This document shows, piece after piece, positions 3,643 to 63,790 of a DNA stretch of 64,000 nt. Made by a program: the position numbers and the translations under genes. Where the stretch lies: contig OU015566.1 of NCBI GenBank assembly GCA_907165135.1, positions 11,842,001 to 11,906,000 on the forward strand, written 5' to 3'. The DNA is from Oikopleura dioica (lineage: Eukaryota; Animalia; Chordata). Every line of letters starts with the position of its first letter. Position 1 is the first letter of the stretch. The notes under the pieces are model-generated. The model ran no database searches, had not been told where the DNA came from, and worked only from the letters and a program-made list of their open reading frames with translations.

Positions 3643-5556
3643 ATGAGCATCCCGGCTTTCGCTGTGGCCTCTGCCCTTGAGGCCTCGAACGTGCTGGTCG
3701 ACAAGAAAGAGAGTTTCACGATCAAAGCAATCTTCAAAACTGATCGTTTTGTAACGAATGCTCTGACTGCCCTGCCTGCTATCGCCTTGGCCTCCCTTTT
3801 GGTAAGAGGTTTTTTCAGCAGAGTCATTCAAGAGAAATTTAGATTATCAAGCCGTCGAGTTTTACGACGGACATAGTCACTTGTACCATCAGGACCAAGC
3901 CTGAAGCGCACTCTCTCTCTGGTCATCTAATCCACGATAACTCCCAGCTCGCCGACCAAAACTTCATCAATGCCTACTGCAACGCCAACTTGAAGAACTA
4001 TACAGTCGATGCAAATGGAATTGTTGCTCCTACCAAGCCGATGTCTTACAAATTCGTCAAGATGTTTCCTTTCCATTTGCTGACTCTGATCATAATTGGT
4101 GGCTGGGTAAGCAATCTTCAGAAAGATTTAGGTCACATGTAAAATTTACTCAAGACTGGACTTTGCTGGGAGATAACGAGTAAAAAACGGTTGAGCCAGG
4201 CTGAGTATCTTTTCGATGGCTTGGAAGAAGCAGCAGGAGACCTTATTAATGCTCTCCGCTCGATTTCCCATCTTCTGGCTGCGAAAACCACGAAGAAACT
4301 CAAAAAAACTTCTCAGAGTGGTGGAACTTTGGCGAGAATGAAGGCGAATCGTAACGTTTAGGGTTAATTACTTAGCTATAAGTATATATTTTACGTTGAA
4401 AACTGAACCCCGAAAAGCGAGAATGTCTCATCGAGAAACTCAAGCCATGACCCTCTGCAAACTGGACTCCTACCCGGCTGATGCAACAATCACACGAAGA
4501 AATAATAATGGCTACGACCACGATTCTGACAAAGAAGATACTGAAGCCTTTATTGTTTGTAACTTACGGCGAACACCTAAGAGTAAAATTCAATTTTAGA
4601 AAAATGACTCTCAAGTGGACATGAACGATGAAGAAATCCAATCTTTCCGAAATCTTTCGCATAAAATTCAGGAACTGGAGGTCAGATCGAGAAAAGATAG
4701 GAATTTATAGCCACATGACATCCTTTTGTCAGACGTCTCTCGACAAGTACTACGCCGAGAACAATATTTATGCGAAATTCATCGAGTTTGATGAGTATCT
4801 TGAGACCCGCGCATCCTCGAAACAATTCATCAGAACCGTTGATCTGAACAGATTGAACTCGTTTCTGATGACTTTGGTTTGTGCTGGGACTCTAGGATAC
4901 TTCTACATCTGGCGACTTCTCTGTAAGAAACAAACTTGATTCAAATAATCTGAATATTGCAATATTTTAGTCGTTTCGAAGGGTATCAATTGCAAACTGC
5001 CTGAGGTCTACTGGTACAAATACATGCCAAAAGCCTTGAACATTTCGGAAGGACCCCAAGAAGAGCAGACATGGACCACGACCAAATGCTACTTCAAGAG
5101 CTTGGGCACTTGGGAACGATTCGCGGAGATTCTCTTTGTCCTCTATGTTTTCATGGCTTTGTTTCAGGTAGAGATAAATTTTTGCCGACTCAGCCAACAG
5201 AGCTTATTCTAGATCTTTTTTGCCCGCAGCTCATCTCTAAATTGGAAGAAGGCTGATCGACTCATCAAATATCTTCCTCTGAACATTGCCCTCAAACGAA
5301 ACTCAGTGACTGACCTGCATCTTTTGATTGCAAAAGTTTCTGAAAACGAAAATGCCAGAAAGGTAAAAAAAAATAAGGAACTAAAGATTCAATATTTTAG
5401 TCAATTGCCATGTGCGACAAGGTTCTCTCGGCCTTGGAAAAATACGAGCAAGAGGAAAAATTCCTGCCTGTTCTGATGGAAGTCATCGTTTGGTCTGCGA
5501 CAGACGAAAAGGTTGGCGATATCGTCAAGAAAGTCCTCCAGCCGAAAGACAAATAG
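3643..5556 (+). CDS. panx: Pannexin/innexin-family channel protein (multi-exon)
   Basis: Spliced translation shows four TM-like segments. Loop 1 has two Cys (DIVTC...NFINAYC) followed by KMFPFHLL (cf. pannexin KFFPYILL). It also has DEYLETRASSKQFI before TM3, loop 2 GINCKLP...TKCYF, and a C-terminal NSVTDLHLLIAKVSEN (cf. NDLSLYNLFLEEN). The exon junction near 4600-4710 is unresolved. Confidence 0.8.
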
Positions 5557-10170: not shown

Positions 10171-13100
10171 CTAGTTTTGAGTTTCTGCGGTGTCGTCTTT
10201 GGGCGCGAATTTAATCGCCAAAACGATGACGATTATGCAGAGTACGAGGACGCAGATCGAAATCAAGATGATCTTTTTCTGGAAAAAATGTTAAGATGGA
10301 GGCGAAAAATTGAAAAATTCTAGGGAAAAAGGGAACTTGTTGAGCGTTGAACTTCTTCAGCCTCTCAGAGGACCAGGATCAGAATAAGGATGACTGTAGC
10401 TTTGGTTTCTTTTAGAGTCAACTTAGGTCAATTTAAGAACCAGAATCAGGACCAGGATGACTTTTGTTTTGGTTCACAATAATATTGGTAGCTTTCCAAA
10501 AATATTTTCTTATTGCTAATTTAACTAAGAATCTTAGTCTAAGATAGAACTTTCGAATCCTTTTTTATGAAGTCTTCAATTATTCCTAAATTAGTACAAA
10601 CCAGTCCCTATCGTTATGATCACACAAATCGTGATGGCAATGCATTTCTTAGGAAAAGAAAACAGTTAATATAATGCCTTCATATGTTAATCAATCTTGT
10701 AAATCAATAGAATCACAAATCAAATCATCGTATCACGCTCATCCGAGGTCACCGCTGAGAGTTCAAGGGGCAACAATCACTTTGTCCCTTTCTCCTTCTG
10801 TCCGGTTATTTTAACCCTCCTCAGGCGAGAGTTAAAATAATCAGACGAGCGTTGATAATGGTAGAAAACACGCGCTCAAGCCAAATCACGAACTCGAGAC
10901 TTACGGAGATCCAAAAATACAGCGCCAGTACAATCACGAGTACTGAAAGCGCCGCCGCGATTTTTAGATATTTCTGAAAATCGCATTCAAAAATTTTTAA
11001 AATAAAAATCGTGAACCGCGGCGAAAAAATAATGCATCAGTGACAACTTTGGTGTTTAAATTCTTGTGCAAAATTACAATTTTTGACGGGACGAACGTAT
11101 ATTTAGGCGGTAGATTGCAGGCTGCAATTTGCAGCGAATAAAAGTTCACTGAGGAAGGGATGTGCTGATTTATTCACGCAGTCTACCGCCAATTGTGTGG
11201 CGTTATGCGGCTTAAAAGTCTATCTATGCGGGCATATTTTTGAGGAAGGGGCAGATTTTCGACCGAAATTAACAGTATGTCTCGAATTTAAAGACAGGGT
11301 CAGGGCTGTCGATTTCGGAGCGTTTGCGATTCTCCGCGATTTTTAGCGGAAAATCCGCTGATTTTCTCCGTTTCTCCGCGCTATTCTCCGATCGTCCGAT
11401 CGGCCGATTTTATCCGCGCGCGCGGATCTTCCGCATTCTCCGCTACCCATTTTTCTCGAGCCAATCAAACGAGCCAGCAAAATTAGAAAGCCAATCAAGC
11501 GAGCTTTATTTTCGCGGATCTTCCGCATTCTCCGCTACCCTTTTTTCCGCTTCATTCCGCACGGATTTCCGCGCGGATCATCCGCGAAAAAAGTTGTGGA
11601 TTTTCCGCGGCGAAATCGCGGAGAAAAAAGAACGCTCCGAAATCGACAGCCATGGACAGGGTAAGAAAAGCTCACGACTTTTTCAGTAGTCACCTTAAGA
11701 ACTAACAATCGTATTTGAATAAATTTGGATAACTGCTATATAAAGAATAAGAAAATTGCTCAGTTATAAAAAGATTCGTTCTATTTTTTTAATTTGGTTG
11801 ACTAAAATATTAGAATTATTAATGCAAAGATAGACTTTTAATCTGGAAGCAGCCTTGGTTACGACATAAAACTTTACCCGTCTCGCTTTGGACTGGTACA
11901 TGATCGCCTTTTTAGTGTCACTGACGGCACTCGAGACGTAGTTGACCGAGTTCTCGACATTGTACTCGATGCGGTCTACCATTTCGCCCTGAATGTTAAG
12001 GTTTAATTACTTTGCGACTCTTCGTTTGGTATTCGACGGCCTTCTTCGTCTGCTCCACCGCCTTTTCGACGTAATCTTGGGTTTGGAAGACGTTATTTTC
12101 AATCCTATCGACCATATCACCCTTTAACAATTTAGATACAACGATACTGACAACAAAGAGAACTACCAAGAAGACCTCCTTTTCAAAGAAAAGTTCAGAT
12201 CTCCTTCGTAATCAAAACAACAAATAAGTACCTGCTCTTGGACAAGCTGGCACATATCCATGAATAAATCGTGCAGCTCCTTGATCGACTTCTCCAATTG
12301 TAAAATATCGTTGTGACGTGCCTCGATTTCACGCGTTTGCTGCGCGTCCATGTTAATCTAAATCCATGACTAACTACAAAATAAGACTTGAGAAGGCAGT
12401 TACCCCCGTGAACATTTGTAAGTTTCCATCTTTCGACTGTTCGATCATTTCTTCGATTTCGTTGTCTGTTGCTGCTTTTCCGATGATTCCCAGTTGTCTT
12501 TCGATCCTCTGTTTACATCGATCCCTGAAATTCAAATTCTCATTAGATTCAGGATTCTCAAGCCTGTGGCTGACCTGTATAAGTTTTGCTCCTGGTTATA
12601 CTCGTTCATAACTTTTATGAACGTCCTCGATAACGTCGAATGCTGAACAAACACGGTAAGAAATGACTGTAAATGGGCTAAGAGCACCTGAGTTTTCTTG
12701 ATACGGAAGTCTGCGGATTGGTTCTGAGTCGACTCTTCTTGCTCGATCTGTTGCTGGATTGCTTTTAGCCTCGACCGGACGCGATTTGCCGTTCGTTTGA
12801 TTTCCGCCATCAGCTCTTCCAGCTGTTCATTCAGTTCTAGATTGGTACATGAGCAAATGACTGTATATATTAATTTATCTGAAGAGATGGAAAATTGATG
12901 AGGCCCTTGAGAAAAGCAAGGGAGGTGGCTGATGGAGCGATGCTCGAAAATTGCGCTTGCTGTGTTTTTAGTTTAATCAATGGCCTCGATAGGGTGATCT
13001 CTCTCCAGACTTGACTTTTTAGGGAAGATTTAATTGGGACGGGGCTAAATTGGATAAACTTACTGTCATCTGTCTGGGCACTACTCAGGATCGTCGAATG

Positions 13101-37569: not shown

Positions 37570-37651
37570 GACTGGATGGCCGAGCGGTCTAAGGCGTTGG
37601 ATTAAGGCTCCAATCTCTTCGGGGGCGTGGGTTCGAATCCCACTTCAGTCA
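37570..37651 (+). tRNA. trnL-AAG: tRNA-Leu (anticodon AAG)
   Basis: Acceptor stem GACTGGA/TTCAGTC, D-loop TGGCCGAGCGGTCTAAGG, anticodon arm TTGGA-TTAAGGC-TCCAA, long variable arm, T-loop GGTTCGAATCC. Confidence 0.97.
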
Positions 37652-46911: not shown

Positions 46912-49900
46912 TTACTCTTCGTTCGTCTTAGCATCCCAAACAAAGAGAGTTTGATCGTCTCCACCGGCGGAGATGATAAATTTGTCGTCGCAAGTCCAGC
47001 AAATTGATGTCACGGCTTCTCCGTGGCCGTAATGCTAGAATAATAAATGAGCGAATGAAGAAAGATTCGTGAGCAAGAATGATTCTTAGGATTATTTGTA
47101 GGATGAGAATGAAATGCGAAAATTCTGACGAATAATAATTTTTCATTAGCTACAAACTAAAAACTGATTGCGCTTTGTATTAGAAACATACCCAGTTGAC
47201 TTTTGCCTTTTGTTTCTTAATATTTTTTATATTATGTCTTGAATTAATAGACCCTTACCATCATTCCTCCCATAGTTTTCGGCGGGAATTCCTGGAGTTG
47301 AATGGATCCTTGATCATCCCCCATCGCGACATATTTTCCTGAAGTCGATACAGTGGCGCAAGTTGAGTTGAAAGGAGCGACAAGGGGATGGCGCGGGCAG
47401 TGGAATGTTTGCCATTTGAGCTGAGGAATTCGAGGATCTTCGAGGTCGAGAATTTCTGCCGATGGAACGATGCAAATGACGAAATCGTCATTGTCCAAAG
47501 CTACAGCAGCGAATCTAGAGAGCAAAAATAGGATAAGAACAATGAGCACTAGACGTACTTTTCGTTCTCTGAGAAGTCGACTGAAGTGACAGGAGCAGCG
47601 AGGCCTTGGGCAAAGCCTTCTTTAGCAAGTTTGAACTTGTTTTCCTGGTCGATTGTGAAAAAGATCAGGTTGTTATCTTGTCCTACTGCCACTTTGTTTC
47701 CGATGTTCTAAAGACTGATCAACAAAACGTTTTCTATAAGCAAGAACCTGGATAAAAGTGATGGGTTTTCCAGTATCTCTTCTCTTCGATAAAATTCGTT
47801 CGTTACATAACACGAGAATTTCCCCATTCTCTAGGCCGACGCAAATGAGCGCCTCGTCGTCAATATCCTGAAGATAAATTAAGCGCTCGTTAGCTTGAGC
47901 AAACACGGAAAACAAGGATTCTAAACGAATGAGTGACTTACTGTCAAGTTCAAATATCGAACAGCGGTCACACCAGCGGCAAAGTGGACTTTTTGAAGAA
48001 GCATCTTTGATTCAACATCCCAGACGCGCAAGGACCCGTCAGATGAGCCGGAAGCGATGAGATTTGCTTGAGTTGGATTGGCACAGACGCAGTTTACTCG
48101 TATTGGGATCTTAGATTCGTTAGACTCCCTCGTCCCCTAAGGTCACTTGCTTATCTAGATCGAGCTTTGCTCGGTCGCCGCCGTGTATTTCTCTCCATTC
48201 GGTAATTCACGCAGTTCGTGAATTAACCTCTATTTTACTCCAGCTCGAAATACAGACGTCAAAGATACTTTACTCGTTTTCTTCACTCGTCCAGATATAG
48301 AGAGCAGGCAAACTACGCTAGAAGTGGGAGATTCAGCAGAAGCTAGGATCCCTTCAGTGGTATCAGAGTAGTCCCGTTGGAGAAAAGGTAAATTTTCCGC
48401 CATCGACAACCGAAGTTTCGCAACTTGGACGCTGATTGGCCGTCAGCGGAGTCGAGGGGAACCGAATCACCAACCGCCACCGCGCCGCCGGAGAAACTCC
48501 ACTCAGAGAATTTTCCGCGCCGCACCACACCAACACCACCCCGAGCGAGCGCCACCACACGAGCGCCACCACGACCCACGCGCCGAAAGTCGCGCCCACG
48601 CAACCACGCACGCACGCCGGGGAAAACCTAAAATACTCAGAAAAACAGAATTCTTTCGCCACTTTTCACCAAAAATCGAGAGAAGTTTACGAAGAATCGA
48701 CCCTTGGACCAGACCTTGAAATTTCGACAATCGCTGGACAGAGAAATCGTCGGGCGTTTGCGCAAAAGGCACCTCAGCTCATCATATTGCGACTTTTAGT
48801 CGCAGTATTTTCTGAGGGCCTGAAAGGTAATCCAAGGCCCATAAACCCTTACTGCCGATATATTTCGAGCTATGGCGGCGAACAAATCACTGCTAGAAAC
48901 CGTCACCGAAATAAGAAGCATAAACGATCGAGTAAACTACCTCGAAGAACAAGTGCGAAATGACGAATCACTTAAGCCAAGCCTAGAGCCCTTGATCACA
49001 GAAAGCAGAGTAAAATTAGAACAGCTCAGTACAACGCTTCTTACCTGCGAGCTCGATCAAGGAAAAGAATCTACGAATGCTACAATGAGAGAAGAAGCAT
49101 GGGTGGCCACTACCTGGTCTCGTCACGTCCAAGACTTGCCGAAGCTGGACGCCGCATGCAACACATCTTTCAACACCTTCTTGGGCAGAGCCGACATTTA
49201 TCACCGCGCCTACGTCCGCGACAGACCTTCACGTGAACAGCCTTTCATCGCAGCAGTGTACAGCCACTTCGACTTGAACATCGAACGCTCACTTGGAACC
49301 GAATTTCTGAATTGTCAAGACTGGAAATCGGCCAAGGCGCTGCTAGAGAAATCATTCGCCGCGAAGAGTCACTACTTACTGAAGCTAAGCGAAGTTTTCG
49401 ACGTCGAATACGACCATTCGAAGCCGTTTGCACACTACACCGCCAACGTCTTGCAAAAGATGAACGAGGCGAAGCAAGCGACTTTGAACTCTTACCGACA
49501 AGAGAAGTCAGCCGACGCCGGGGTCGATGAAATATTCGACATATTCTCGACGATGATGCTGTACTTGAATCTTAGGAAAGAAGAACCAGACGTTTTCAAC
49601 GCAATCCTTCCAAGCCTATCAAAAGTTTACGATATCAACGAACTCTGCCGTCTCGCCCAATCCACAAGACAGAATCGAGTTGACAGCGCGACCGTCTCCC
49701 AGCACTTCAACAGAAATAAGAACAAAAAGAAGAAGAATGCTAAGCGCGCCAGCACCGATTCTAAGGATGGGAAAGACGATAAACAACCAGAATCCAAGAA
49801 GATTAATACGACTAAGAACGTCGAAGATTTCCAACCATTCGATGTTCACTTTTACACAGTGAAGAAGAAGCGACCAGGAAAGGCTTATTTCGCTTCGGCT

Positions 49901-52900
49901 ACCATCATTACGGGCTCTAAAAGTTTTGACGTATCGATGGAAGTCGACAGCGGAGCCGAGTCCTCCTGTCTGTCCGCTGCTTACGTTCCCGACAAATTTC
50001 TCCAGATGCTGAAGCCCTGCCCCTTCAAGGTCACCGGTTTCAGCCCAAATATCCCCGCCGAGCAGCCGAGGGGTATCCTTCCCTGCCGCTTATCATTCAA
50101 TGGTGGCCCTGCATTCTCCTTGAATCTCACCATCATGCCAGGCAGTAAATACCCAAGTCTACTGGGCCGCGATATACTAGAGAATGCGATGACGGACAGC
50201 TTCACAGTCGACAATAAGAATCGTACTCTCTCATTTTGCTACAACGAAGCCTTCACACAAACTGAGACTCAAGTGGTGAAGCTGGACGGAGTGAAGCGGA
50301 CCAAAATCAAGAAATACTTGACGACTAGATCAGCGGTCAAAGACAGCGATCGGTCCCGCACTCAACCACCACGAGAAGTCCCAAAGCTGGACGCGCCGAA
50401 CAAGAACGCAGCCAGGTGCCCCATTCAGCTAGCGAAGCAAAAACTCGGAATAACCCTACCAGCAGACGCAGACCCGGGGCAAAAGAAGATGGTCGCCGAG
50501 CTGTGTTTGGAATTCGACGACAGATTCGGCTGCGACGGTCAAAAAATGGGTGAATTCCCGTTCGAGATCGAAATCCCGACTGATGGTACGAGTCGAAACA
50601 TCAGTCAACACCCGATTCCGCAAGCTTTTCATGGTCAGGTCAGCGATCACATCTCCGAACTGCTCGAAACGAAAATAATAGAAGAGATCAAAGACCAGAA
50701 AGGGTTTAACAGCCCGGTATTGCCTATTCCTAAGAAATCTGGGGAAATGCGCTTCTGCATCAACTACAAAAACAGCCTGAACAAATGCCTCTCCGACAAA
50801 TCCGACCCTTACCATCTCCCAAGCATGGAGGATACGATTGCGAACATTGGACCGGGCAATAAGTTTTTCGCCACAGTTGATCTACGAAGTGGATATTGGC
50901 AGTGCCCTGTAAAGAAAAGCGACAGGTACAAGACTTCCTTCCAGTGGGGTGGGAAATCTTACGCCTTCTGCAGACTACCATTCGGTTATCGATGCTCGGG
51001 GAATATATTCTCGCGCGTCGTAAACACAATTCTCGACTCAAGCCCCACCAGGAAAAAGATGCTTTCTTATATCGATGACATAGTGTGTTTTGGGAAGACT
51101 TTCAGCTGCTATTACAACACTCTCCGAAACCTATTCATCGCGCTCCGCAAGTTTAACGCTAAACTCAAGGGCGAAAAGTGCTCTTTCCTACAATCCGAAG
51201 CTCACTTTTGGGCCGAATCATCAACGAAGATGGAATCAAACCGGACCCTGCGCAAGTCTCCGCTCTTCGTCAGATGAAACCCCCACGCTCCCAAAAGGAG
51301 TTAGCTTCATTAATCGGGTCATTGAATTGGATCCGAGGTTTTCTAGAAACGAAAATGGGCGAAGCTATTTCATCCGGTTGCTTCTCGAGCAGAATGAAGC
51401 CCATAAACGATGTTCGAAATTCGGCGAACGAAACAAATTGTTTCAAGTGGACCAAAGAAGCGGATTTGGCGCTCAAGGAAATTCAACGACGACTCTCCGA
51501 GACTCCAGTCATAAGTTTTCCTAACTTTGACGAGTCTTTTCATCTCTACACAGACGCGAGCCTGTACGCAGCGGGTGGCGTCCTGCTACAAGAGTATGGC
51601 GGGAGAGTGCACCTAGTAAGCGCGATTTCCCACACCTTCAACAAAGCTGAAAGAAAATGGAACACTTCAGAAAAGGAAATGTTTAGCATTGTCTGGTGCT
51701 GCGAGCGACTGGAAAAGCTCCTGAAAGGTAGATTCTTTCAGATTCACACAGACCACCGATCTTTGATCTTCCTACACAAAAAGAAGTTCAAGAATTCTAA
51801 AATAAGCCGATGGCAAAGCCGATTGGAAGAATTCGATTTTCACATTGTCTACATCAAGGGATCAGAAAATCAATTCGCCGACTTTATGAGCCGCAGACCT
51901 GGCGAGGACGACAAATCACTTGGATACGACTCTGAGTTTCCCGTTGGTCGCGAGTACGAAATCGACAAGAATTCACCAGTACGTGTCTTCGTCCCTTTCT
52001 GGAACGAAAATCAGTTTCCGGAGAAAATCACTTTATCAGAGGTGAAGATACATAAGGTAAACGTCAAGGCTATCGCGGCGCCAATGGAGATTCCGTTGGT
52101 GTCAGCGAATTATAATAACATTCTGGACTATCAAAGGGAGGACTCTGCTCTGAGTGCAATCATCACTTTTCTGGAATCTGGTAAGGAGCCACTGGACATA
52201 AAATCGCTGGTGAAGGACTCCGACCACCGACAATCGTCTCTACTCAAGATGGAAAAAGCTCTGTTCCTGGATAACACTACCGGGTGCTTGATGTGTCAAT
52301 TCAAATCTGGCGCGCGGGCGGTGGTACCGGAAGCGGTAAAAAGTCACTTTCTCTTTCTAGCTCACGACTTGTCCGGTCATCTGGGCGAGCCGCGGACTTT
52401 AGAGCGATTAGAGGACGTTTGGTGGCCTTCATTTCAAGACGATGTTTCTAACTACGTCCACAGCTGCGTCCCTTGCCTACGCAGAAAAGGATCTGCTGGA
52501 ACTCGTACCAAACCGCCACTTGGAACCCTTCGTCGTGGAAAAACAGCTGGCGAATCGATTCAGATCGATTTCGCTTGTATGCCTCCCGCTGGCGGATTCA
52601 AGTATTATTTGGTGGTGGCGGACACTTTCTCTCGCTACACTTGGTGCATTCCGACGCGGTCCGACACTGCTATCTGCGCTGCAAAAGCGCTCATCTACAA
52701 GGTCTTCCTTCCCATGGATTTCTTGCCGAAACATCTACACAGTGACAGAGGTACCCACTTCTGCGCAAGCGTGATTGACGAAATGTGTAAGCTTAACCAG
52801 ATAAAACATACAATAAGTACCGCATTTCACCCTCAATCAAACGCTTTCGCAGAAAGAGCGAATCGGACTATCAAAAACAGTCTATTCTGCATGGTCAACT

Positions 52901-55900
52901 CATCTTCCGGTCGAAAAACTTGGGCCGACTGCGTTCCCCACGTGATGCGCGCGCTCAATAGTGTGAAAAACAAAAGCACGAAAATTTCACCGCGAGAAGT
53001 TTGGTTTGGCCGAAAAAGTACTTTCACCCACTCTACTGGCGCAGAAATGACAGCGGAAACACCTCAGGTGTTTGGTCTCAATGTGGGAGCTTTAGCGAAA
53101 TCGGCGGAAGCCATTGTGAAAACTGCGATGGAAGCTGCTGACCGAGCCATGGAGCACAGGCTGAAAAACGAGCCTAAGCCGAGACCAATCCCCGCTGGCG
53201 CTGTCGTGTACATTAAGCGAGAAAACCTGACCGACGCTAAAAGCAAGAAGGAACGCTGGGTAGGTCCCCTGAAAGCCGTTTCGAGCAACGACTGGGTCGT
53301 CATGGTCGAAGATAAAAAAGGACAACGTGATTTCATCCATCGAGAACACGTGGTTCACGCCGCAGAACGAAATCACGACTTACGCTGGATTGATTACTAC
53401 GAGGCCGAGTACGTATTCCCACATTTAACCGAAATCGTTAAGTCGAAAGTCCCACAAAAATCGCCTGTTCCTACTTCCAAACCGATGGAAAAGTCCGGGT
53501 CGAAGTCGCATGGGGGGAGGAAATCTTCTCAGGTCGCGTCGACTCCGATGGTTGCTATGGAAAAACCGCCAAGATCATCTCTATCACCTATTTTGGAAAG
53601 TAGACGCCGATTGGACATGGAAAATCTGGGAGATACAACCGCTACATCTATTTTGGACTCGTCGGTAGCTCCAGCCGAGCCGTCAGATCGCTGGTACTCT
53701 GGTGGTACTCTTTATGAAACTGCCGAGGACATGTCAGCTGATGCTACAGTGATTTCGGAGGTTGCTGCGCCCGACAATAGCCATATGTCAGTCGATAAAC
53801 AAAATTCAACAGTAGTTGAGGGCTCAGCAACTGAAAACAGCAAGAAAAGAACCCGTCCAAAGTCTTCACCAGATCGTCAATACTCAGCCGGCGCCGATCC
53901 GAATGCGACTTTAACCGAAGTTGGAGCAGCTCATCTCCCGAAACATACAAAACGAGCACACCGTGAAACGAGGCCCGTCGAACCTCTAAACATCGGCACA
54001 AACTCGGGTCAGTCATACGACTAAGCGCAAGTACTGCCCCACTCAGGTCCCCTATTCATCGACCGGGGCCTGAAAAGGTACGGAAATTATCACAGTTTAC
54101 CGTCGCCGACGTATTTTGAGTTCTTCTACATGTGCAGCTACTCCTTCATGTCATCACCGCTCGGACATCACGAAAACTTCGCATCTGATTCAAGCTTTTT
54201 CCCAAAAAAGGGTTTTTTAACGCGAATCAGACTGCCTCGACGTTTCGAACCTGCCATGTTACTCATCTTACGCTTATACTCCTGCAAAAATCACACACTT
54301 TGGCCTTAGAGGACGTTTCAGTCTCATGGGGGGTATTGGGATCTTAGATTCGTTAGACTCCCTCGTCCCCTAAGGTCACTTGCTTATCTAGATCGAGCTT
54401 TGCTCGGTCGCCGCCGTGTATTTCTCTCCATTCGGTAATTCACGCAGTTCGTGAATTAACCTCTATTTTACTCCAGCTCGAAATACAGACGTCAAAGATA
54501 CTTTACTCGTTTTCTTCACTCGTCCAGATATAGAGAGCAGGCAAACTACGCTAGAAGTGGGAGATTCAGCAGAAGCTAGGATCCCTTCACTCGTCCTGGC
54601 GCAAAGTGGCCCATTGTCATCATCGAAACTTATTATTTTTATTTTCGAAAGAAAAAAAACTCTCTTACCTTCGCTTGTTTTTTCGTTTATCACAGCAACG
54701 GCGTTGTCTTTTGTTCCAACAAGGATCTTTCCTTTGACTCGGGCAACAGCTTTGACAGTTACGCTTTCTTTAGCGTCGTTCTCGATTGGAACATGGAAGC
54801 TCTTGCATTTCTTCATCTGACTATCCCAAAGCTTAATTGCGCCGGAGGAAGACTTTTCTTTGCCACCGGTCACGATCAATCCGTCTTTCAAAGTCGTGAA
54901 CATGGCAAAAACGGGACCATTGTGAGCTCGTTCGATGATTCTTTGCGCGTTTGAACCTTGCCAGACGATGACAGCTCCAGTTGCCATTCCAGTAAAAGTC
55001 ATATCGTCAGTGCCAAACGCCAAGCTCAAACATGTGCCGACTTGATTGAGGTTCAGACAACCTGGCTGGGCTTTTTTACAAAGCAAGACAGAACCAGCAA
55101 TTTGCCAGAAAAATAGAGCGCGTTCACCGACAGTCACGAATTTCGAATCAGAATCTGGTCGGAAATCTGCTTGGAAAATTTGACGAGGACCGGAGCATTT
55201 CGATGCAACTTTCTGGCCAGTTTGCCAGCGGTAAACGGAAACTGTGTGTTCGGAATCGAGTGACGCGGCGAGGATGAGCTTTCCAGATCCAGAGAAAGAG
55301 ACTGCGGATACTCCTCCTGAGAGACCAGAGATGATCGAAAGCGTCTCGGTAGTTGACTCATTGTCGTCGATATTCCAGACATGAACGCTTCCTCCAAGTT
55401 GACCAGTAGCGACTACAGATCTATAGTTTGGATGTTTATTCTGCGTCAGGCAAAGAATATCGTCGGAATGTTGGTCATAGAAGAACTGCTCTTTGGTTTC
55501 CATATCTTGGACGATCGCAACGCCAGCAGCGTGGTAAATGATCCGCGAAATGGTATCAGGGCCAGTAGCAGAGAGTTGAAAGTCCAGATTACAGCGAGCA
55601 TCATATCCTCGATAGCCGAAAACATGCTTGAGTGCGAGAGTGTCGATTTTATTGTCATCTTCTGAGTTGAAATTCGCCATGAAGTTGAGCTCGTCGCCTC
55701 CACGGGCAAAATGCGTCCTAGACTCTATTGGCTCTAGTTCGATTTCAGCTGCGTCGCCCTTGTTACGTCGCTGTTCTCGTCGGTTATCAGAGTTTGTCTG
55801 TCTGTCGTAGTCGATCTTCATCTCTTCGTCGACGTCGCTATCGAAGAAATCATCATCGTCGTCAGTATCTTCGTCATCCGACTCGTGGACTTCCTTGCTT

Positions 55901-58900
55901 TCAGGTCGTTGCCAGATCATCACGGAGGCGTCTAATCCACCAGTGGAAACAAGCTGGCTATCACCTGCTGTAAAGCGAACTTTTGTAATGTGCGAAGAAT
56001 GGCCGGTGTATTTCTTGCATTTCGCGTGCTTTTCCATCGAAGGATACTTGAACAGCTTCACCATTCCAAAATCATCACCAGTAGCGATGATGTTCATATC
56101 TCGATCAGTGCAGGCAGTGTTAATGTCTGTAACATTCGTATATGCAGGCCAGATTCCCTCAACTTCTGGACCTAGAACAGACGTCCACAGATGCCAGGAC
56201 ATCTTCGCAATGGTTGCTTTATCAGGAGTGATTCGCTTGCAGCTTGGAATTTCATAGAACAATCGCTCGCTTGCGCCGGAGTTTATTTGAATGATTTTGC
56301 CATCGGTAGTCCAATCTACGTGAGTAATGTAGCTAGAGCTTCCCTTGCAAATTCCGATTCGTTTCTTCTTCTGGATCGAGTAAACATCGACGAAGTTTTC
56401 GTGACTGCCAACAGCGACGAATCTGCCAAAAGGATCAAACTTGACATCCGAAATATTCTGCTTTCTATGTTGGAATTCTTTCACAATTTCCAGTGATTCT
56501 GCCTCAAGAAGCATGACTGAACCATCAAGGAAGCCAGCAACAATGATAGTTCCGTCGGGAGAGTAAGTAAGAGCTCGTCCAGCTTTGCCAAGCTCTTTTG
56601 CTGCGGTCATCTTTTGGTTTTCCACATCCCATACTCGAATGCTCTTATCGTCAGAAATCGTAGCAACGACTTGTTCCTCTGGATGAGTGGCCAAGCCCCA
56701 AACTTCGCCCTGCGCGTGTCCTTGGACGAGAACTTTGATCGGTCCTTCCTTGTCAAGTTCCATCAGCTCACCGTTCTTTGTACCAGCGATAAGGAAGTCG
56801 TCTCCCATGATGATTGTTCGAATCGATGGATTATCCGCAATTAGAGGACCATGCGAGTCTTCGGAGACATTTTCCGCTTTGACCTCGTAATCTCGTTGCT
56901 TCTCGGTCATGTCCTGGTCCCAGAGATAAATCCATCCGTTCTTTCCTCCGGAGAGAAAACCCTCTGGCAACTTGCAAAGCGTAAACACAGGGCCTTCATG
57001 TGAGTCGACGACTCGCTGGAGTTGATTTCCCTGCCAGCAGTAAATCTTTCCATTTTGCCCTCCTGAATAGAAGATGCCCTCGTCTTCGCCATGAGTGCCG
57101 CAGAGATGTGAAGTTGTTTCTCCGTTTGAGCCGCAGATACCTCGCTTTCCTTCAGCGCTAGCGCCAACAATCTTCCAGAACTTGATATGCTTGACTCCAG
57201 TGGACACAAATTTCAACGGATCATGTGGATCAGAGAGGACGCAGAAGACCTTGTCTTTCGACCCGTTGACCTTGGAAACGCATTCTCCTCGACGCCAGTC
57301 CCAAACAGCTATAACATGCTCGTCCGAGAGACCCACTGACAATAGTCGTTTTCCGTCAGAGGTAAAATCCAATGCACATACGCCCCGTTCGTGAACGCCG
57401 TTGAAGATCGAGATGGTCTGCATCGTGAGAGCATCCCAAACATGAATGGCTGGGTTACGCCCGATTTGACCAGTGGCGACAATGTCCTTTAGAAATGGTT
57501 AAAAAAGTGTGTTGAAGAAGAGTAGTCTGAATTGGGTTACCGCTCCGCGCGGCCTCGCTACATTGATCTCACATCGCTGGTCACCGGCTAATCCCAATCC
57601 TACTCGACACAACTGTCCCTCCCGAAGGAGATCGTCCAGGAAATGTGACGAGCGGAGAAACAATTTCTGGTTCCCGGTAGTGTCTTCCGACACCAGTCCC
57701 ATCACGAGACTAACCAGCCAGGGTGAACCTGACTGGTGACCTCTCAGACCTTCCCCGGGTGCAAATAGCCCCCGCCAGCAAGCTTACTTCGACGGCAATG
57801 ACGGTTTATTTCGCGGTTTATAAATTGAATATCGCCGGGAGCTAGTAAGCTGGGGTGTTATGGTCCCCATTTCCATCAAAGTTGGGGATGCGAAATTTGG
57901 GGTTAATTTGAAAACTGAGCACCATAACACCACCCCCACCAAGAAATCCCCCGATTTTCCTTTATAAGCCCCAAAATTGACCCTTCTCCCCCATCAAGGC
58001 CGGAAGGTTCGCTGTCCGGGGCCGTTTCGGCGGCACCGGGGGAAAGTCCCCAGTCCCGTGGCGGAGAGCGCCCATCCCGAATCTGGGATGAACGCTGCGT
58101 AGAGCCGAGCAAAGGCAGCGGTGACGGACTTGTCCGTAGCTGACGGTGAGGTAGCGTACTCGACACGAGCGAAAGTTATGCGAACAGCCCGAAAATGGTT
58201 TGGGTGAACTCAATGGGGCTTACTCTTCGGACTTGTATCTTTTTTACCATTTTCCTTGGTTGGGTGGAGAGTCAGGGATAGAATATCATCTGTGTGTCCA
58301 TAATAAAATCTTTGCGAATGCTCCTCTCGGTTGTAAACGATTCCAAGAGCTGCGGAGTGAAAGACGATTTCGCCAGCTTGAGTGTATTTGACGTTCTCTC
58401 GGCAATCGTGGCCTCTGTAACCTGCACACCATTTCAAAGTCAGACTGTTCTCTGGTGCACTTGGGCGCTTTTGGGAAACTCCTTCAGTTTTGGTGCTCTC
58501 GGACTTGAGTTGAATAATGTCTTCGTTGTACAGATCACGGGAATAAGTTTCTTCCATTTCCGCTTCCAGATCTGAGTCTACGTCGCGATCTGGATCGGAT
58601 GAATCCGAATCCTCTGAATTAGAATCGATACCAGAGTTCGAAGCAATGTCATCATCGTCGCCTTCGACAACTTCTACACCTTCGTCAATGCTTTCAGAGT
58701 CACCGACGAGCTTCCATTGAAAGAGAGCATGATCGGCGCCGCCAGTTGTAAGTAGATAATTTCCATCTAGAGTCCAGCGCACATTCGTAACATGCGCAGA
58801 GTGACCATTGTACTTTCTGAACTTGGCGCCACGCTTGGAAGCTGGGTAACGGAAGAGCTTCACGAGACCGAAGTCGTCTCCGGTCGCGATTAGGTCGTTT

Positions 58901-60489
58901 TCGCCACGCTTGTCTACCGAGTTGACATCGTTCAATTGAGAGTACTTCGGAAAAACTCCATCCACGTTTTCACCAACGACGCCTGTCGTCGTCGCCCATT
59001 CCAAGCCTCCAAGAACTTCTGAATCAGTCACGTGTTCACCACTAGCATCGTAAATTAATCGCTCTCCCGCTCCGTCACAAGCAGCGATGTGAGAAGAATC
59101 AGCTGACCAGTCAAGTTGAGTGATAAACGAGCTAGCCTTCGCACCAACAGCCGTATCAGCGTAATCATCGGCGACGGTGTAAATGTCGATCTTGTTGTCG
59201 TTCGATCCGACCGCGAGGAATTCACCAGATGGCGAAAATGCGCAACAATGACGGGCTTGTTTTCGATCATGAATGGCTTTCACCTCGCTCATGTCCTCCG
59301 CGTTGTAGATTTTCAGCGAGCCATCTTTGAAACCAACGGCGATGGTGGAACCATCAGGTGACCAGCAACAGCTTCGAGCTTCAGCCTCAGCGTAAGCGAC
59401 CAGACTTAGCTCGTGAGCTTCCAAATCCCAAACGCGAATTGATTTATCATCAGAAGCTGTCACCGCTTTCATTTCTTCCGGATGCGAGGCGAGGCCCCAA
59501 AGTTCTCCTTCCGAATGCGCTCGAGTAATCCAGGTGATTTCTTCATGATCAGCGTTGAGAACAAGAACATCAGATTGAGATGTTCCTACGAGAATTTCAC
59601 CATCGTCGTTGATGCTCAAAGATCGAATGTAACTAGTCGCTAGTTCGGCTTCTAGCTCTCCAAGTTCGATCTTCTTCGTGATTTCCAACTCGTTGTCGAG
59701 CATAATGATGCAACCAAATTTTCCACCAGCGATGTATCCGTCAGCGTAGGAGTGAATTGAGTAAATTGGTCCAGGCGCAGCGTTCGGAAGGGATTTGACG
59801 AGGTTATTTCCTTCCCATGAGTAGATGGATCCGTCCATCGTTCCGGACAAGACTCGGCCAGTTTCGTTTTCACGAGTGACACAAAGAACAGTTTGAAGGG
59901 ACCCGTTGTCTCCAAAGACACCTCGTTTCGACTTGAGCGTGTTTCCCATCAAGTTCCAGACCTTGATATGCTTCACGCCGACTGTATAAAAGCTTCCATC
60001 GTTGTTTGGCGTGAAGCAAGAGTCGAAAATGCGATCCGAATGGCCGGAAACGATACAGAGTTGCCTCGCCGATTCCCAGTCCCAAATTGCAACGAGACTT
60101 TTTGGGTCAATCCCAACTGAGAGAACTCTACTCCCGCATGTAGAAAAACCAACGCTTCCGACACCGTGAGTGTGGGTTCCTTCTTTCTTGAGAACAGATT
60201 TCGTCTTCATCGTCGTGGTATCCCAAATGTTTATTTGGGGATCTTTTCCAGTTTCGCCAGATGCAGCTAGCTTCTTGTTTGGATGCATTGAAAGGCAGAG
60301 AATATCATCATTGTGATGAAGGTAAAAAGCCTGCTTTTGATGATCTTGAGAAAAGACGATTCCAGTCGCTGCAACGAAGTAGACAATGTGGCCTTCTTCA
60401 TTGAAATGGCAGTTCGACCGACACTGGTGGCCTCGGTATCCGTAGACCCAGTTAAGCCGGAGGGATTGATCTGGTACTTTCTTACTCAT
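46912..60489 (-). CDS. EML6: Echinoderm microtubule-associated protein-like 5/6 (triple HELP/WD40); one exon interrupted by an LTR retrotransposon
   Basis: Three HELP motifs (LRLNWVYGYRG, LTLKWCAGYRG, LALKHVFGYRG), WD40 arrays, and GDDFGLVKLF/GDDFGMVKLF...GHSAHVT/GHSSHIT motifs. Removing the element restores MTMGHFAPGR-VNCVCANP. The protein ends ...GGDDQTLFVWDAKTNEE*. Confidence 0.93.
48101..48356 (+). repeat. 5' LTR (256 bp)
   Basis: TATTGGGATC...GGATCCCTTCA. No difference from the 3' LTR found by eye. Confidence 0.97.
48358..48368 (+). other. Primer-binding site, tRNA-iMet-like (TGGTATCAGAG)
   Basis: Begins after a 1-nt spacer following the 5' LTR and starts with TGG (complement of CCA). 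Confidence 0.8.
48872..54024 (+). CDS. Gag-Pol polyprotein split by a 1-nt frameshift within RT
   Basis: Protease VDSGA, RT LPFG...YIDD, RNase H TDAS...E...TDH, integrase H-H-C-C plus D-D-E (IDF, SDRG, AERAN). Adding one T to the run at 51206-51209 joins ORF 48872-51277 to ORF 51178-54024 (...EAHF-LGRII...). Confidence 0.9.
54334..54589 (+). repeat. 3' LTR (256 bp)
   Basis: Same sequence as 48101-48356, preceded by GGGGGG (54328-54333). Confidence 0.97.
57501..57506 (-). terminator. Pol III terminator of RNase P RNA
   Basis: T6 on the minus strand just after P1. It is also within the pyrimidine-rich region of the host intron acceptor. Confidence 0.8.
57511..57793 (-). ncRNA. RPPH1: RNase P RNA (eukaryotic nuclear)
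   Basis: Minus strand carries CR-I GGGAAGGTCTGAGA (57755-57742), a CR-II-like CCAGAAA, a UUCG-capped hairpin, CR-IV GTGAGATCAATG and CR-V AACCCAATTCAGACTACTCT (57538-57519). CR-I and CR-V are identical to human H1 RNA motifs as I recall them. P1 helix is GTCGAAG/CTTCAAC, followed by a T6 terminator. Confidence 0.95.
57818..57967. promoter_or_regulatory. Bidirectional type-3-like Pol III promoter: two divergent PSE-like + TATA modules
   Basis: ACCATAACACC starts at 57921 (+) and 57864 (-). TTTATAA starts at 57961 (+) and 57824 (-). The offset is exactly 40 nt in both modules, and the RNA 5' ends lie about 31-32 nt past the TATA start. Confidence 0.8.
57993..58239 (+). ncRNA. RMRP: RNase MRP RNA
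   Basis: CR-I GGGGAAAGTCCCC (GAAAGTCCCC at 58042-58051), GARAR-type pentaloop hairpin GGCG-GAGAG-CGCC (58060-58072), CR-IV-like AAGTTATGCG, and CR-V CAATGGGGCTTACTCT (58211-58226) able to pair with CR-I. P1 is CAAG.CCGG/TCGG.CTTG, followed by a T6 terminator. Confidence 0.9.
58240..58245 (+). terminator. Pol III terminator of RNase MRP RNA
   Basis: T6 immediately after the P1 3' strand. Confidence 0.8.
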
Positions 60490-60668
60490 CCCCTTTTGAC
60501 TTCTGAAAGAAATCGATGAATGAAAAAAGGGACATTTCTTGCGAGACGGTTTAAATAACAATTATTTATCAGTATCTCAAGCAAGCTGTGGAATATTTGA
60601 CAGTGAACGTTGAAAGAAATAAGGAGCTGTACAAAAAGTTAAACTAAAATATTTATTTTCCTTCGTTT

Positions 60669-63600
60669 CTATCCTTTTAGCTTTGGCCATCGCTGTTTGA
60701 TGTGATCAGCTGATTTGGCAGTAAGCTTCATGCCAGCGGCAGGATGAGCTCCTGGCATAACCTTTCGCATGTACACTTTTTGCGCGAAATCCTCGCTGCA
60801 GAAGAGAATTTCGCAGTCGTATTCTTTCGACGGTTTCCATGTTCTTTCATAAAGCGCCATTCCGACTTCTCCTGGCTCCTAAAACGAGTTATAAAAACGA
60901 AAAGAAAATTGAGAACTTACGATATCCCAATACATTCCACGGACGCTTTCTGACGATTTATCAACAAAGCTGATTTTTACCAATTGAGGCGATGAATTTT
61001 CCGGATCATCCGTCTCGAAGAAATCACCTGCTTTCAAATTGTCGAAGTCCAAATGCGCCTGGTACTTCGGCTTTGCTGCTTTCTCCGCTTTAGCCTTCTC
61101 ATTTGCTTCTTGTTTAATTTTCTTTTTCTCTTCAGAAAGGCGTTTTTCTTTTCGTTTTTCTTCGTCAGTCTTGACTTTTCTCTTCTTCTTCGGAGGGCTT
61201 TTCGCTTCTTTCGCAGCCTTTTCTGCTTCTCTTGCCGCTTTCATCGCTCTTTTCTTTTCCTCCCTTTCGATTTCCTTCGCTCGACGCTTTTGTTCTTTGA
61301 TGATTTGTTTTTCTTCGAATTTTTTCAAGTCCTGCTCGAGTTTTCTCTTCTTCTGAAGCTCACTCTTTGGCCCGGGCTTTCTCATTTCCTCCCTCTTCGG
61401 ATCATCCTTTCTCGGTCTTCCAACAAATTTCGGCTCTTCATCTTCGCCCATCATTTGAATCACCTTTTCTCTCTTTCTGAACTCTTTTTCTTTCTGCTCG
61501 ATGATCTTCTTATCGACACCTTGTTCACGAGCAGCTTCGAGTTCTTTGCGCTCTTGTTCAAGCTCTTCAAGTCGAGTTTCTCGCTCCATTTCAGTTTGAA
61601 CTTTATCTCTTTTTCGGGGGTAAACATTGCTGAAGACATAGATGAGAGCTTAATGAAAGAGAGATAGAGAAAAACTCTTCCAGTTTTCCTTATTTTTAGC
61701 CCCGCCCTGGTAATTTTAATTGCCCGTTGGATATTGCTCTTGACGGTGTTATCGATTTTCTTCGTCCAAGGATCATCAGAATTGAAGGATCCAATTCCCT
61801 CATCCTCGTTGCTTTCACTTTCCGCTTCACTTTCAGACTCAGCGCGCAACTTATCCTTTCTGACGTGCCACTGGCCCACTTGTCCTTTTTGGATTACTCT
61901 GCTTTCTACGTCAACGACAAACGGTCTTCCGCGTTTTATTTTCGTCGAGTTGGCGATCTCCACTAGATCCTGTAAACCAATTTGTTAAAATAATCAAATT
62001 TGACCTTTGCCGTTTAAAATTACCTTTGAGGGGTAGATACTCTTGTTTCCCTTGGGAAAGAAGCTTTGTTTCTCAACAAGGTGTTTCTGATTGAAAGTTT
62101 CGACGGTTTGATGCTTCCGCACAACAATTTTTCGTTCTTCTTTGCTCGGGCTCACTTGCTCATCCTCAGGTCTATCAATAGTAGCCACTGCACATCTAGC
62201 AACGCGGGATGTCTGGGCTGCATGGCGAATTCGCTGTCTTCGATTGTAGATGCTATTTTCATCGTCTAAACTCGGCACACCGGCGATGATCCGTTCCGTT
62301 TCTCTCGCCCTGTCCTGTAAAAGAAAATATTTACAAAGTGAATCAGATCGGTCTTATTTACGATTATACGCTGTCTTGTGCGGTCGACGATATCTGCCGG
62401 ATTATTGACGCACTTGTAGTAGATCATATCCGCATCAGGAGGGGTACACTCGTGAACTCGTTGGATCGTGGCTTTGTACGCGTCAAACGTCATTCGTAGA
62501 TTTTGCACGGCGAAGGAAAGCGACTCGTCGAAGTCGCCCTTATTGAGTTTTTTTTAAAGTTTTGACCGTGAAAAATACCGATATTTCGTCGACAACATTC
62601 AGCAGCGCTGGACTAACTTCGTCAGAATTAATCGCGTGTTGCCAAACATCTGATGTTCCAAGGAGCTTTTGTGTATGAGTTGTTGGAAATTCAAAAGCTC
62701 TGGAGGGAACAATATCAGAAATAAACATGAAATTCGAGTGTTTACCCAAGATGGTGTAATTGCCAAAAGACCGCATAAGTGTCCCTCAAACCGTATTCAT
62801 GGAAGCTTTCCATCGCAAATTCGTAAAGAATTTTGTATTGAGCAGGAGTCATTCGAATGCCGCGCTTGGTTTTGTTCGTCTGAGTTGTATAAAGAGCCAA
62901 AAGCATGTAGATACAGGTTGATCTCACCAAATGATCCGCCTAAATCGACATTCAAATGGGGTTTGTGCCACAAACTTTGTTGGAAAAACGGGCGGTGTTT
63001 TCGAGAACTGGGTGTTTGATTTAGCAAAAATTCTCTAGATGAGCCGGCGTGCTGTTGTCTTTTGCCAGAATTTGATCAGAGAGAGGTACGCCTGCTCCTT
63101 AAAGCAGGGTCCAGAAAGAGTGATTAAGAGGTAAGATTATTGCAAAAAGAACTTTTGATAACGCAAATTTTAGAGCATTGGCAACATGGACACAATGCAG
63201 AGCTGAAGCTCTTCTTCACTCCACCGATCGAGGAGTTCTCGCACTATCTCGACGGAGTCAAGTCCAAAAGGGGATTGGCACACGATTCGATTTCGTAAAA
63301 AACGAAGTCGTTGAAAATAACTGGGCGACATATCCAATCACCACGAACTGTACAACAGTTACAGCCTCGTATTCAGCTACTTTCTGCCAATAAAAGTTGG
63401 CTGCGCCAAATACAACCCTTATATTCAGACCCTTCCGAAAAGCTCTTTGTAGAGTTCTTTGGAAGATTTCTTGTCACGTCATTTCTTGCAGGCTATACTT
63501 ACATCCTTTAGCACTAGAAACTGAACGACGCAGGAATAGCAAGCATCAATAAAGTCAGCCTTGTCAGACTCACTCGTTCGTCCGTCAAAAATCTTGTACA

Positions 63601-63790
63601 TTTCCAAATCCTGCCACATGTGCGTGAATGCTAAAATATCTCAATTAAAAGCACGAATATCAAGCCTTTTCTTACTGGAATAGGTTCCCGCTCGATCTTC
63701 TCCTTCATCCTTGATTCTATGAATGAGAAAATCAAAGTCGGTCACAAATCCGGCCGCCTTTTTTCCGGATTCCATCGATTCGACCGTCTA
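60669..63790 (-). CDS. Large hypothetical multi-exon nuclear protein with a K/E-rich region and a possible C-terminal BAH-like domain; likely 5'-incomplete
   Basis: Chain of minus-strand open segments, including KRGRP, a K/E-rich coiled coil (60879-61589) and GDFFETD...VRGMYW...YERTW...EILFCS, which resembles a BAH pattern (inference). Confidence 0.45.

Follow-up and report, generated by a model that had tools for sequence, protein, structure and literature searches.

Here we show that the RNA genes of RNase P and RNase MRP stand head-to-head in the genome of the appendicularian Oikopleura dioica, inside an intron of an EML5/6-like gene that consists of little else. The pair lies in a 64,000-nt stretch of contig OU015566.1 (assembly GCA_907165135.1, positions 11,842,001 to 11,906,000, forward strand), which was analysed as a whole and is called the window throughout; coordinates are window positions. 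We consider it likely that the two genes form a self-contained cassette of ~745 bp, equipped with two type 3 RNA polymerase III (Pol III) promoters, that was inserted as an intron. More tentatively, and with somewhat less than even confidence, the data suggest that two essential ribozyme RNA genes, each in its sole copy, move together as a single portable Pol III cassette, which landed in a protein-coding exon and turned into a new spliceosomal intron with a GA 5' end, removed at the duplicated target.

RNase P, which cleaves the 5' leaders of pre-tRNAs, and RNase MRP have most of their protein subunits in common, and their RNAs are ancient paralogues; in human, the map positions of the corresponding genes, RPPH1 and RMRP, differ. 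The P and MRP genes are unlinked in the model organisms studied. For human and mouse, PMC4287351 cites a reference for this lack of linkage and for a bidirectional region that RPPH1 shares with PARP2.

Full-length RNase P and RNase MRP RNA genes in divergent orientation

Rfam covariance models return exactly two RNA genes other than tRNA genes in the 64-kb window. They are oriented head-to-head and transcribed away from each other, with 200 nt between their 5' ends:

57994..58235, + strand: RNase MRP RNA gene, ~242 nt plus a short 3' tail (Rfam RF00030)
57511..57793, - strand: nuclear RNase P RNA gene (Rfam RF00009), ~283 nt and in addition a short 3' tail

The MRP match (57994-58235) reaches 122.0 bits, with the gathering score at 50 (E 1.1e-33), and spans model positions 1-266 of 266, while the P match (RNaseP_nuc, 57793-57511) scores 115.7 bits against a threshold of 28 (E 1.6e-32) and spans positions 1-301 of 301. 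Both genes had been named in an earlier reading of this DNA (the original prediction), and the cmsearch run with RF00009 and RF00030 that it proposed as a check bears the two identities out, with full-length matches far above threshold that are significant over the whole of both models.

The core elements agree with these assignments. In the P RNA, the P4 pseudoknot sequences CR-I (GGGAAGGUCUGAG) and CR-V (CCCAAUUCAGACUACUCU) fit the model consensus, as do the CR-II/III and CR-IV elements (ACCAGAAAU and AGCGAUGUGAGAUCAAUG). The MRP RNA carries the signature elements GGGGAAAGUCCCC, a CR-V-like AAUGGGGCUUACUCU, and a GAGAG pentaloop on a GGCG/CGCC stem. The last of these, GGCG-GAGAG-CGCC at ~58060-58072, conforms to the GARAR pentaloop closing P8 that serves as the signature of MRP (PMC4287351, PMC13184271).

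The gene pair fills a GA-AG intron of an EML5/6-like gene

The minus-strand open reading frames (ORFs) on either side of the pair are parts of one EML5/6-type gene, as judged from Pfam matches to Beta-prop_EML, Beta-prop_EML_2 and HELP with E down to 1e-109; the best named protein matches are fish EML5/6, at ~46% identity. The downstream exon is 71% identical to residues 745-1236 of P0001, an EML protein encoded on a metagenome contig. The host features are as follows:

58255..60561, - strand: upstream EML5/6-like exon, an open frame (Pfam HELP, Beta-prop_EML, Beta-prop_EML_2)
57487..58254, - strand: GA-AG intron of the EML5/6-like gene, 768 nt, with bounds set from the protein
54466..57486, - strand: downstream EML5/6-like exon, an open frame (Pfam Beta-prop_EML, Beta-prop_EML_2)

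Joining 58255 to 57486 yields ...LTLHPTK|DIVATGQIG..., a peptide that is contiguous in four metagenome proteins (P0001, P0019, P0041 and P0227). The nesting of the pair in an EML intron at 57487-58254, as originally proposed, therefore holds, since GA-AG bounds restore a peptide that intron-less relatives encode unbroken. Two other 5' splice sites were considered and rejected: use of the canonical GT at 58247 would bring in 7 nt and throw the exons out of frame, and a GG-AG cut at 58248 stays in frame but adds a Glu-Asn found in no relative. From the restored peptide we infer that the host transcript is spliced at the GA-AG bounds.

From T-run to T-run, the cassette (57501-58245) takes up 745 of the 768 nt of the intron (97%), so that the MRP terminator comes to within 9 nt of the 5' splice site and the P terminator to within 14 nt of the 3' splice site. 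The P RNA lies on the sense strand of the host and the MRP RNA is antisense to it. Introns of Oikopleura have a length peak at 47 bp, with 2.4% exceeding 1 kb, and GA/AG ends occur in ~12% of them, with a threefold enrichment among newly gained introns (PMC4122922). At 768 nt, the present intron is ~16 times as long as is typical of Oikopleura.

Orthologous carriers and selection on both RNAs

The same arrangement is found in a diverged lineage, represented by a 32-kb European Nucleotide Archive (ENA) metagenome contig (L002), which was reached from a protein search with the upstream EML exon via a near-identical ORF, P0055. Its EML protein is 94% identical to that of the window. MRP and P genes lie head-to-head between the same two EML exons, in a GA...AG intron of 766 nt at the same codon boundary. 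Window and L002 share the locus order EML, leucine-rich-repeat/immunoglobulin (LRR/Ig) gene, animal haem peroxidase gene, and the synteny from EML to LRR/Ig indicates that the loci are orthologous. The arrangement is likewise kept in the genomes of two further organisms, B and C, ~97% identical to the window, with contigs that span 3 kb and 57728-58338.

Pairwise alignment of window and L002 gives identities of 88% for MRP and 85% for P, and the L002 copies score 120.3 bits (MRP) and 112.1 bits (P) with the Rfam models. The GGCG-GAGAG-CGCC element is the same in both. Six pairs in the MRP helices and seven in the P helices have changed on both sides, and none is broken in either RNA, counts which rest on structures predicted from two sequences and carry correspondingly modest statistics. 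With 13 compensatory pair changes and no broken pair, both RNAs are therefore under selection, and the conservation of structure, catalytic-core motifs and promoters across lineages argues strongly against pseudogenes.

Lineage-specific differences were also seen. At 57717-57741, a hairpin of ~13 nt is present in the window lineage's P RNA and has no counterpart in L002; it falls in an insertion relative to the Rfam model and constitutes a lineage-specific expansion segment. L002 (9905-9937) has ~23 extra nt just before the 3' splice site (...CGCATAAATTAAACCATAAAAAG) in comparison with the window. Remodelling of the intron's 3' end must therefore have followed the split of the lineages, with the AAG|GA junction left intact.

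Two putative type 3 promoters

The region between and beyond the two genes contains the following elements:

57921..57931, + strand: MRP proximal sequence element (PSE)-like box ACCATAACACC, ~-73 to -63, in a conserved block at 57920-57937
57952..57958, + strand: MRP mid-promoter box CGATTTT, from the comparison of four promoters
57961..57967, + strand: MRP TATA box TTTATAA, starting 33 nt before the Rfam start
58240..58245, + strand: MRP T6 terminator; T5A in organisms B and C, T4 in L002
57865..57920, no strand: inter-PSE spacer, not conserved, 44% identical to L002
57854..57864, - strand: P PSE-like box ACCATAACACC, ~-71 to -61; ACCATAATACC in L002, in the same register
57828..57834, - strand: P mid-promoter box CGATATT; CGAT(A/T)TT is kept in all four promoters
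57818..57824, - strand: P TATA box TTTATAA, its start 31 nt ahead of the RNA; the same in each of the four promoters
57501..57506, - strand: P T6 terminator, read from the sequence; T5 at the same place in L002

Exact copies of ACCATAACACC occur twice in the 64-kb window, as mirror images at 57921-57931 (+) and 57864-57854 (-). A tolerance of one mismatch raises this to three matches, where 0.49 would be expected; the additional one, at 12111, is followed by neither a TATA box nor an RNA gene and was set aside as a chance match. From the start of either box it is 40 nt to the start of TTTATAA (57961 on the plus strand and 57824 on the minus strand), so that either gene presents the series ACCATAACACC, 29 nt, TTTATAA, 31-33 nt to the RNA start (33 nt for MRP, 31 nt for P) and a T6 end, the T-run beginning at most 4 nt past the RNA. 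In all four promoters, from two genes in two lineages, ACCATAAYACC is followed in one register by 29 nt containing CGAT(A/T)TT and by TTTATAA, and a C-rich/AAWT stretch after TTTATAA is also common to them. The MRP promoter block CACCATAACACCACCCCC is identical in L002.

Identity between window and L002 over the 75 nt upstream of the genes is 75% for MRP and 65% for P. The inter-PSE DNA is 44% identical with 22 gap columns, the spacer being 22 nt shorter in L002, and the spacing of the two transcription units differs by 24 nt. No conserved central element and no fixed geometry between the units, as a shared bidirectional core would have, was seen in the comparison of window and L002. Two of the features originally described here, a pair of divergent box-TTTATAA modules with identical 40-nt spacing and a T6 end to each RNA, are present as described. 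The further idea that they make up one mirror-image promoter is not borne out: there are two PSE-TATA modules with an invariant 40-nt register, and the spacer between them is neither conserved nor constant in length. Because of this property of the spacer, seen in the comparison of window and L002, the locus has two mirrored, abutting promoters rather than one shared core.

Most likely, then, each gene has its own putative gene-external, small nuclear RNA (snRNA)-type, or type 3, promoter. Such a promoter would comprise a PSE-like core CACCATAAYACC (~-74 to -61) and a TATA box 40 nt on, with initiation ~31-33 nt past the start of the TATA box. As a promoter of the kind to which SNAPc (snRNA-activating protein complex) binds, it would allow each gene to be transcribed by Pol III independently, up to the T-run a few nt beyond the P1 helix; the use of Pol III with SNAPc, TBP and Brf2, as expected of this promoter type, and the exact RNA ends are deduced from this layout. 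The 5' half of the PSE-like box is similar to the consensus of vertebrate PSEs. In U6, 7SK and RPPH1, the PSE is described as lying 40-70 bp upstream of the start, and the choice of Pol III as made by a TATA box downstream of it (PMC9652321). The P and MRP promoters match this position rule, and a TATA box at fixed spacing and an oligo-T end accompany all four. A scan for bacterial sigma-70 promoters and intrinsic terminators found nothing, which is irrelevant to a eukaryote.

The same elements bear on the possibility that the P RNA is mainly processed from the excised EML intron, its PSE and TATA being relics, and that MRP is the only one of the two to use Pol III. The P gene does lie on the host strand, and in Drosophila a Pol II gene supplies the RNase P RNA from one of its introns (PMC4287351). 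Pol III signals are missing from the RNase P RNA genes of insects, but not from the P gene here, where PSE, mid box, TATA box, 40-nt register and T-run have been kept while neighbouring bases vary. We regard this scenario as improbable: the excised intron could in principle be a source of some P RNA, but the conserved P promoter argues against it as the main route. The independence from an insect-type host transcript that had been proposed is thus supported, as judged from signals present and conserved on the P side.

Two observations stand beside these elements. In organisms B and C (runs X6 and X8), variants at 58245 and 58250 give the host 5' splice region as GAAAGT instead of GAAAAT, nearer to the GTAAGT consensus except at position 2; in the same genomes the MRP terminator is shortened to T5A. 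One base pair is thereby under two constraints, on opposite strands. In addition, exons of a homologue of SNAPC1 (SNAP43, PF09808) were found at 62745-62930 (-) and 63482-63619 (-), with E of 2e-7 and 8e-4. They lie ~4.5-5.4 kb from the cassette, on the host strand, and L002 has a counterpart at 4577-4768; this neighbourhood is kept in L002 and was not seen upstream of EML in L003, a contig of another lineage. SNAPC1 is a subunit of the factor expected at PSE-like boxes, so the organism encodes at least this subunit of SNAPc; its position next to the cassette is probably a coincidence.

Related lineages with an uninterrupted EML gene

In three more distantly related metagenome lineages, represented by P0001, by P0019 and P0041, and by P0227, an uninterrupted EML ORF runs through the site, with read-through peptides of the form HP(T/S)K-DI(V/C/A)A and no break:

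P0001 on L001: ...LTIHPTKDIVASGQ; site DNA ACA AAA GAC ATT
P0019 and P0041 on L003-L007: ...LTIHPSKDICATGQ; site DNA AGC AAG GAT ATT
P0227 on L081: ...LTLHPTKDIAASGQ; site DNA ACT AAA GAC ATT

The P0227 lineage came from a second protein search centred on the EML junction. Rfam searches of the fetched contigs of the three intron-less lineages gave no P or MRP gene. L004 and L005 carry the downstream LRR/Ig neighbour as in the window, which identifies them as the orthologous locus. A tRNA gene is located ~0.7-0.9 kb downstream of the end of the EML ORF on L003-L006 and L081.

A maximum likelihood tree of EML proteins was built from 830 aligned residues, the outgroups being EML5/6 from fish, hemichordate and mollusc; a second EML tree omitted two long-branch outgroup rows. 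The topology is ((L003,P0227),(L001,(window,L002))), and every such fork has ultrafast bootstrap support of at least 99 and SH-aLRT support of at least 98. On this tree the intron is explained by one gain on the stem of window and L002, versus two exact losses. Because of this difference, and because a loss would delete both essential RNA genes, insertion is favoured over loss: most likely, to judge from the sequences, the whole cassette was inserted into the EML coding sequence on the stem of the two carriers.

The ends of the intron suggest how this may have happened. The pentamer AAGGA is present at both:

58253..58257, - strand: 5' copy of the direct repeat AAGGA, spanning the exon/intron junction; kept in L002
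57485..57489, - strand: 3' copy of the direct repeat AAGGA, spanning the intron/exon junction; kept in L002

The empty sites read AAG GAT (L003) and AAA GAC (L001, L081). An insertion at ...AAR|GAY... would leave AAGGA at both ends, either as a 5-bp target duplication or through repair of a staggered break, and this duplication would account for an intron that starts with GA instead of GT. Host Pol II would then read through the cassette and the spliceosome would remove the insert together with one copy of the repeat, exactly, so that the insertion would be tolerated. Both the direction of change, gain and not loss, and the mechanism of insertion are proposed on this comparative basis. A terminal inverted repeat was considered as evidence of a transposon and set aside, the candidate repeat being 16 nt long, 81% matched, largely made up of the two terminators, and present in the window and not in L002. 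There was also no sign of a multi-copy element, as no other copy of the cassette was found in the window or the fetched loci and no transposase was seen.

In the opposite history, the intron and the P/MRP pair would be ancestral to the whole group and would have undergone precise deletion at least twice, once along the L001 branch and once along the stem of L003 and P0227, for instance by recombination with reverse-transcribed spliced mRNA after a P/MRP copy existed elsewhere. For Oikopleura, this kind of route has been put forward to explain massive intron loss (PMC4122922), and empty sites look alike whether they follow an exact loss or never received an insertion. Against this, a well-supported tree would demand two exact losses versus one gain, either loss would cost two essential genes in the absence of a pre-existing duplicate, and GA-AG ends together with a length 16 times the typical value are traits of new introns. 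We consider such a history unlikely, although it is the most credible of the alternatives considered.

Expression

A 194-nt contig of a random-primed marine metatranscriptome, X13, aligns within the 3-kb stretch around the cassette at 58001-58194, inside MRP only, which hints at MRP expression. In each of around 15 marine metatranscriptomes from several studies (among X13-X32), 9-15% of the 31-mers sampled from the 741-nt cassette are present, a share equal to roughly one of the two RNAs or its conserved part; X13, the only metatranscriptome of that set to be aligned, held MRP but not P.

That the locus holds non-functional or redundant copies, a by-product of segmental insertion with the working P and MRP genes elsewhere, seems very improbable: although 64 kb of the genome were covered and Didemnum, another tunicate, can have two MRP loci (PMC5006418), the 13 compensatory changes with no broken pair, the core motifs, promoters and terminators conserved across lineages, and the MRP-only contig in a metatranscriptome all speak against it.

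The linkage of the two genes may help to keep in proportion the output of two RNAs in competition for a common set of proteins. If there is co-regulation, it would stem from their proximity, through shared chromatin or the local concentration of factors, and not from a common core promoter.

Neighbouring features

The window also contains a tRNA gene with a long variable arm at 37570-37651 (+), scoring 57 bits. The EML reading frame stops at 54463, beside two long plus-strand ORFs at 48872-51277 and 51178-54024. In L002, the EML ORF ends after 925 aa, and the LRR/Ig gene follows ~2 kb further on.

Discussion

Several observations weigh against our interpretation of the locus as an inserted Pol III cassette. 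With regard to the insertion, a 5-bp repeat is partly expected at any AG|G...AG|G intron and is therefore supportive, not decisive; an exact loss leaves the same site as one that was never occupied; exact intron loss is common in this group, so that two losses are not impossible; and the pair may have existed elsewhere before it moved, or the intron-less lineages may have lost an old intron once they had gained another copy. The terminal inverted repeat of the window was, moreover, not found in L002. With regard to transcription, an oligo-dT, species-labelled RNA run (X24) gave no reads on 56500-59500, and the transcript ends, the polymerase, SNAPc binding and host splicing are deduced from the sequence. 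The PSE assignment derives from the four P and MRP promoters. When metagenomes were searched for CACCATAAYACC followed by 28-30 nt and TTTATAA, the 73 loci retrieved were all unrelated, mostly recurring bacterial coding sequence, and had no U6, 7SK, P or MRP motif downstream.

The components of the locus are standard ones. As in the vertebrate RPPH1 and RMRP genes, which are of type 3, the same two RNAs have an external promoter and an oligo-T terminator, with a PSE-like element ~55-75 nt and a TATA box ~25-33 nt upstream; unlike them, the genes are 200 bp apart and head-to-head, with no distal enhancer evident and no room for one. The intronic RNase P RNA genes of insects and crustaceans (PMC4287351), the closest known case, resemble the present one in their sense orientation inside a host intron and in a location gained by insertion. 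They are without Pol III signals, and the insect genes depend on host Pol II, with MRP encoded separately, whereas here both RNAs lie in the intron with PSE, TATA box and T-run, MRP is antisense, and the cassette is the intron. Divergent small-RNA gene pairs, snRNA clusters among them, are a further parallel. In Trichoplax, two opposite Pol III genes are likewise found at most a few hundred bp apart, as head-to-head 5S genes (PMC2655684); these represent one gene in two copies, with promoters inside the gene, in contrast to two ancient paralogues with mirrored external promoters.

In its proposed origin, the intron can be likened to gains by introners, by miniature inverted-repeat transposable elements (MITEs) or by double-strand-break repair, which share with it a lineage-specific distribution, 5-bp repeat ends, an empty site in relatives, an exactly restored reading frame and a non-canonical 5' splice dinucleotide. 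It differs from introners and MITEs in that the insert is apparently a single-copy pair of essential Pol III genes, and in that its inverted-repeat ends are weak and not conserved.

Linkage of P and MRP genes did not turn up in a literature search, subscription journals being outside its coverage, and is nowhere described in PMC5006418, PMC4287351, PMC2655684, PMC13184271 and PMC1796607, among which are P/MRP surveys and annotations of tunicate non-coding RNA. A metagenome scan for head-to-head pairs (reverse complement of P CR-I, 258-288 nt, MRP CR-I) returned 0 matches from a collection that is evidently without this locus, and is uninformative on other taxa. A prior description of the arrangement may exist.

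From an evolutionary standpoint, the locus would be an unusually clear case of the origin of a new intron, with a functional cassette placed where relatives have unbroken coding sequence. It joins three topics that are usually separate, namely how Pol III genes move, how introns are gained and how permissive splicing is in appendicularians. In insects, an RNase P RNA that came to lie in an intron gave up its own promoter; in the present case, both RNAs would have moved into one with their promoters retained. The conserved head-to-head pair also offers a natural test case of whether linkage keeps the two RNAs in proportion. If our interpretation is true, an intron would have been born by the capture of a functional pair of non-coding RNA genes, and the linkage of P and MRP RNA could be created or preserved by such moves.

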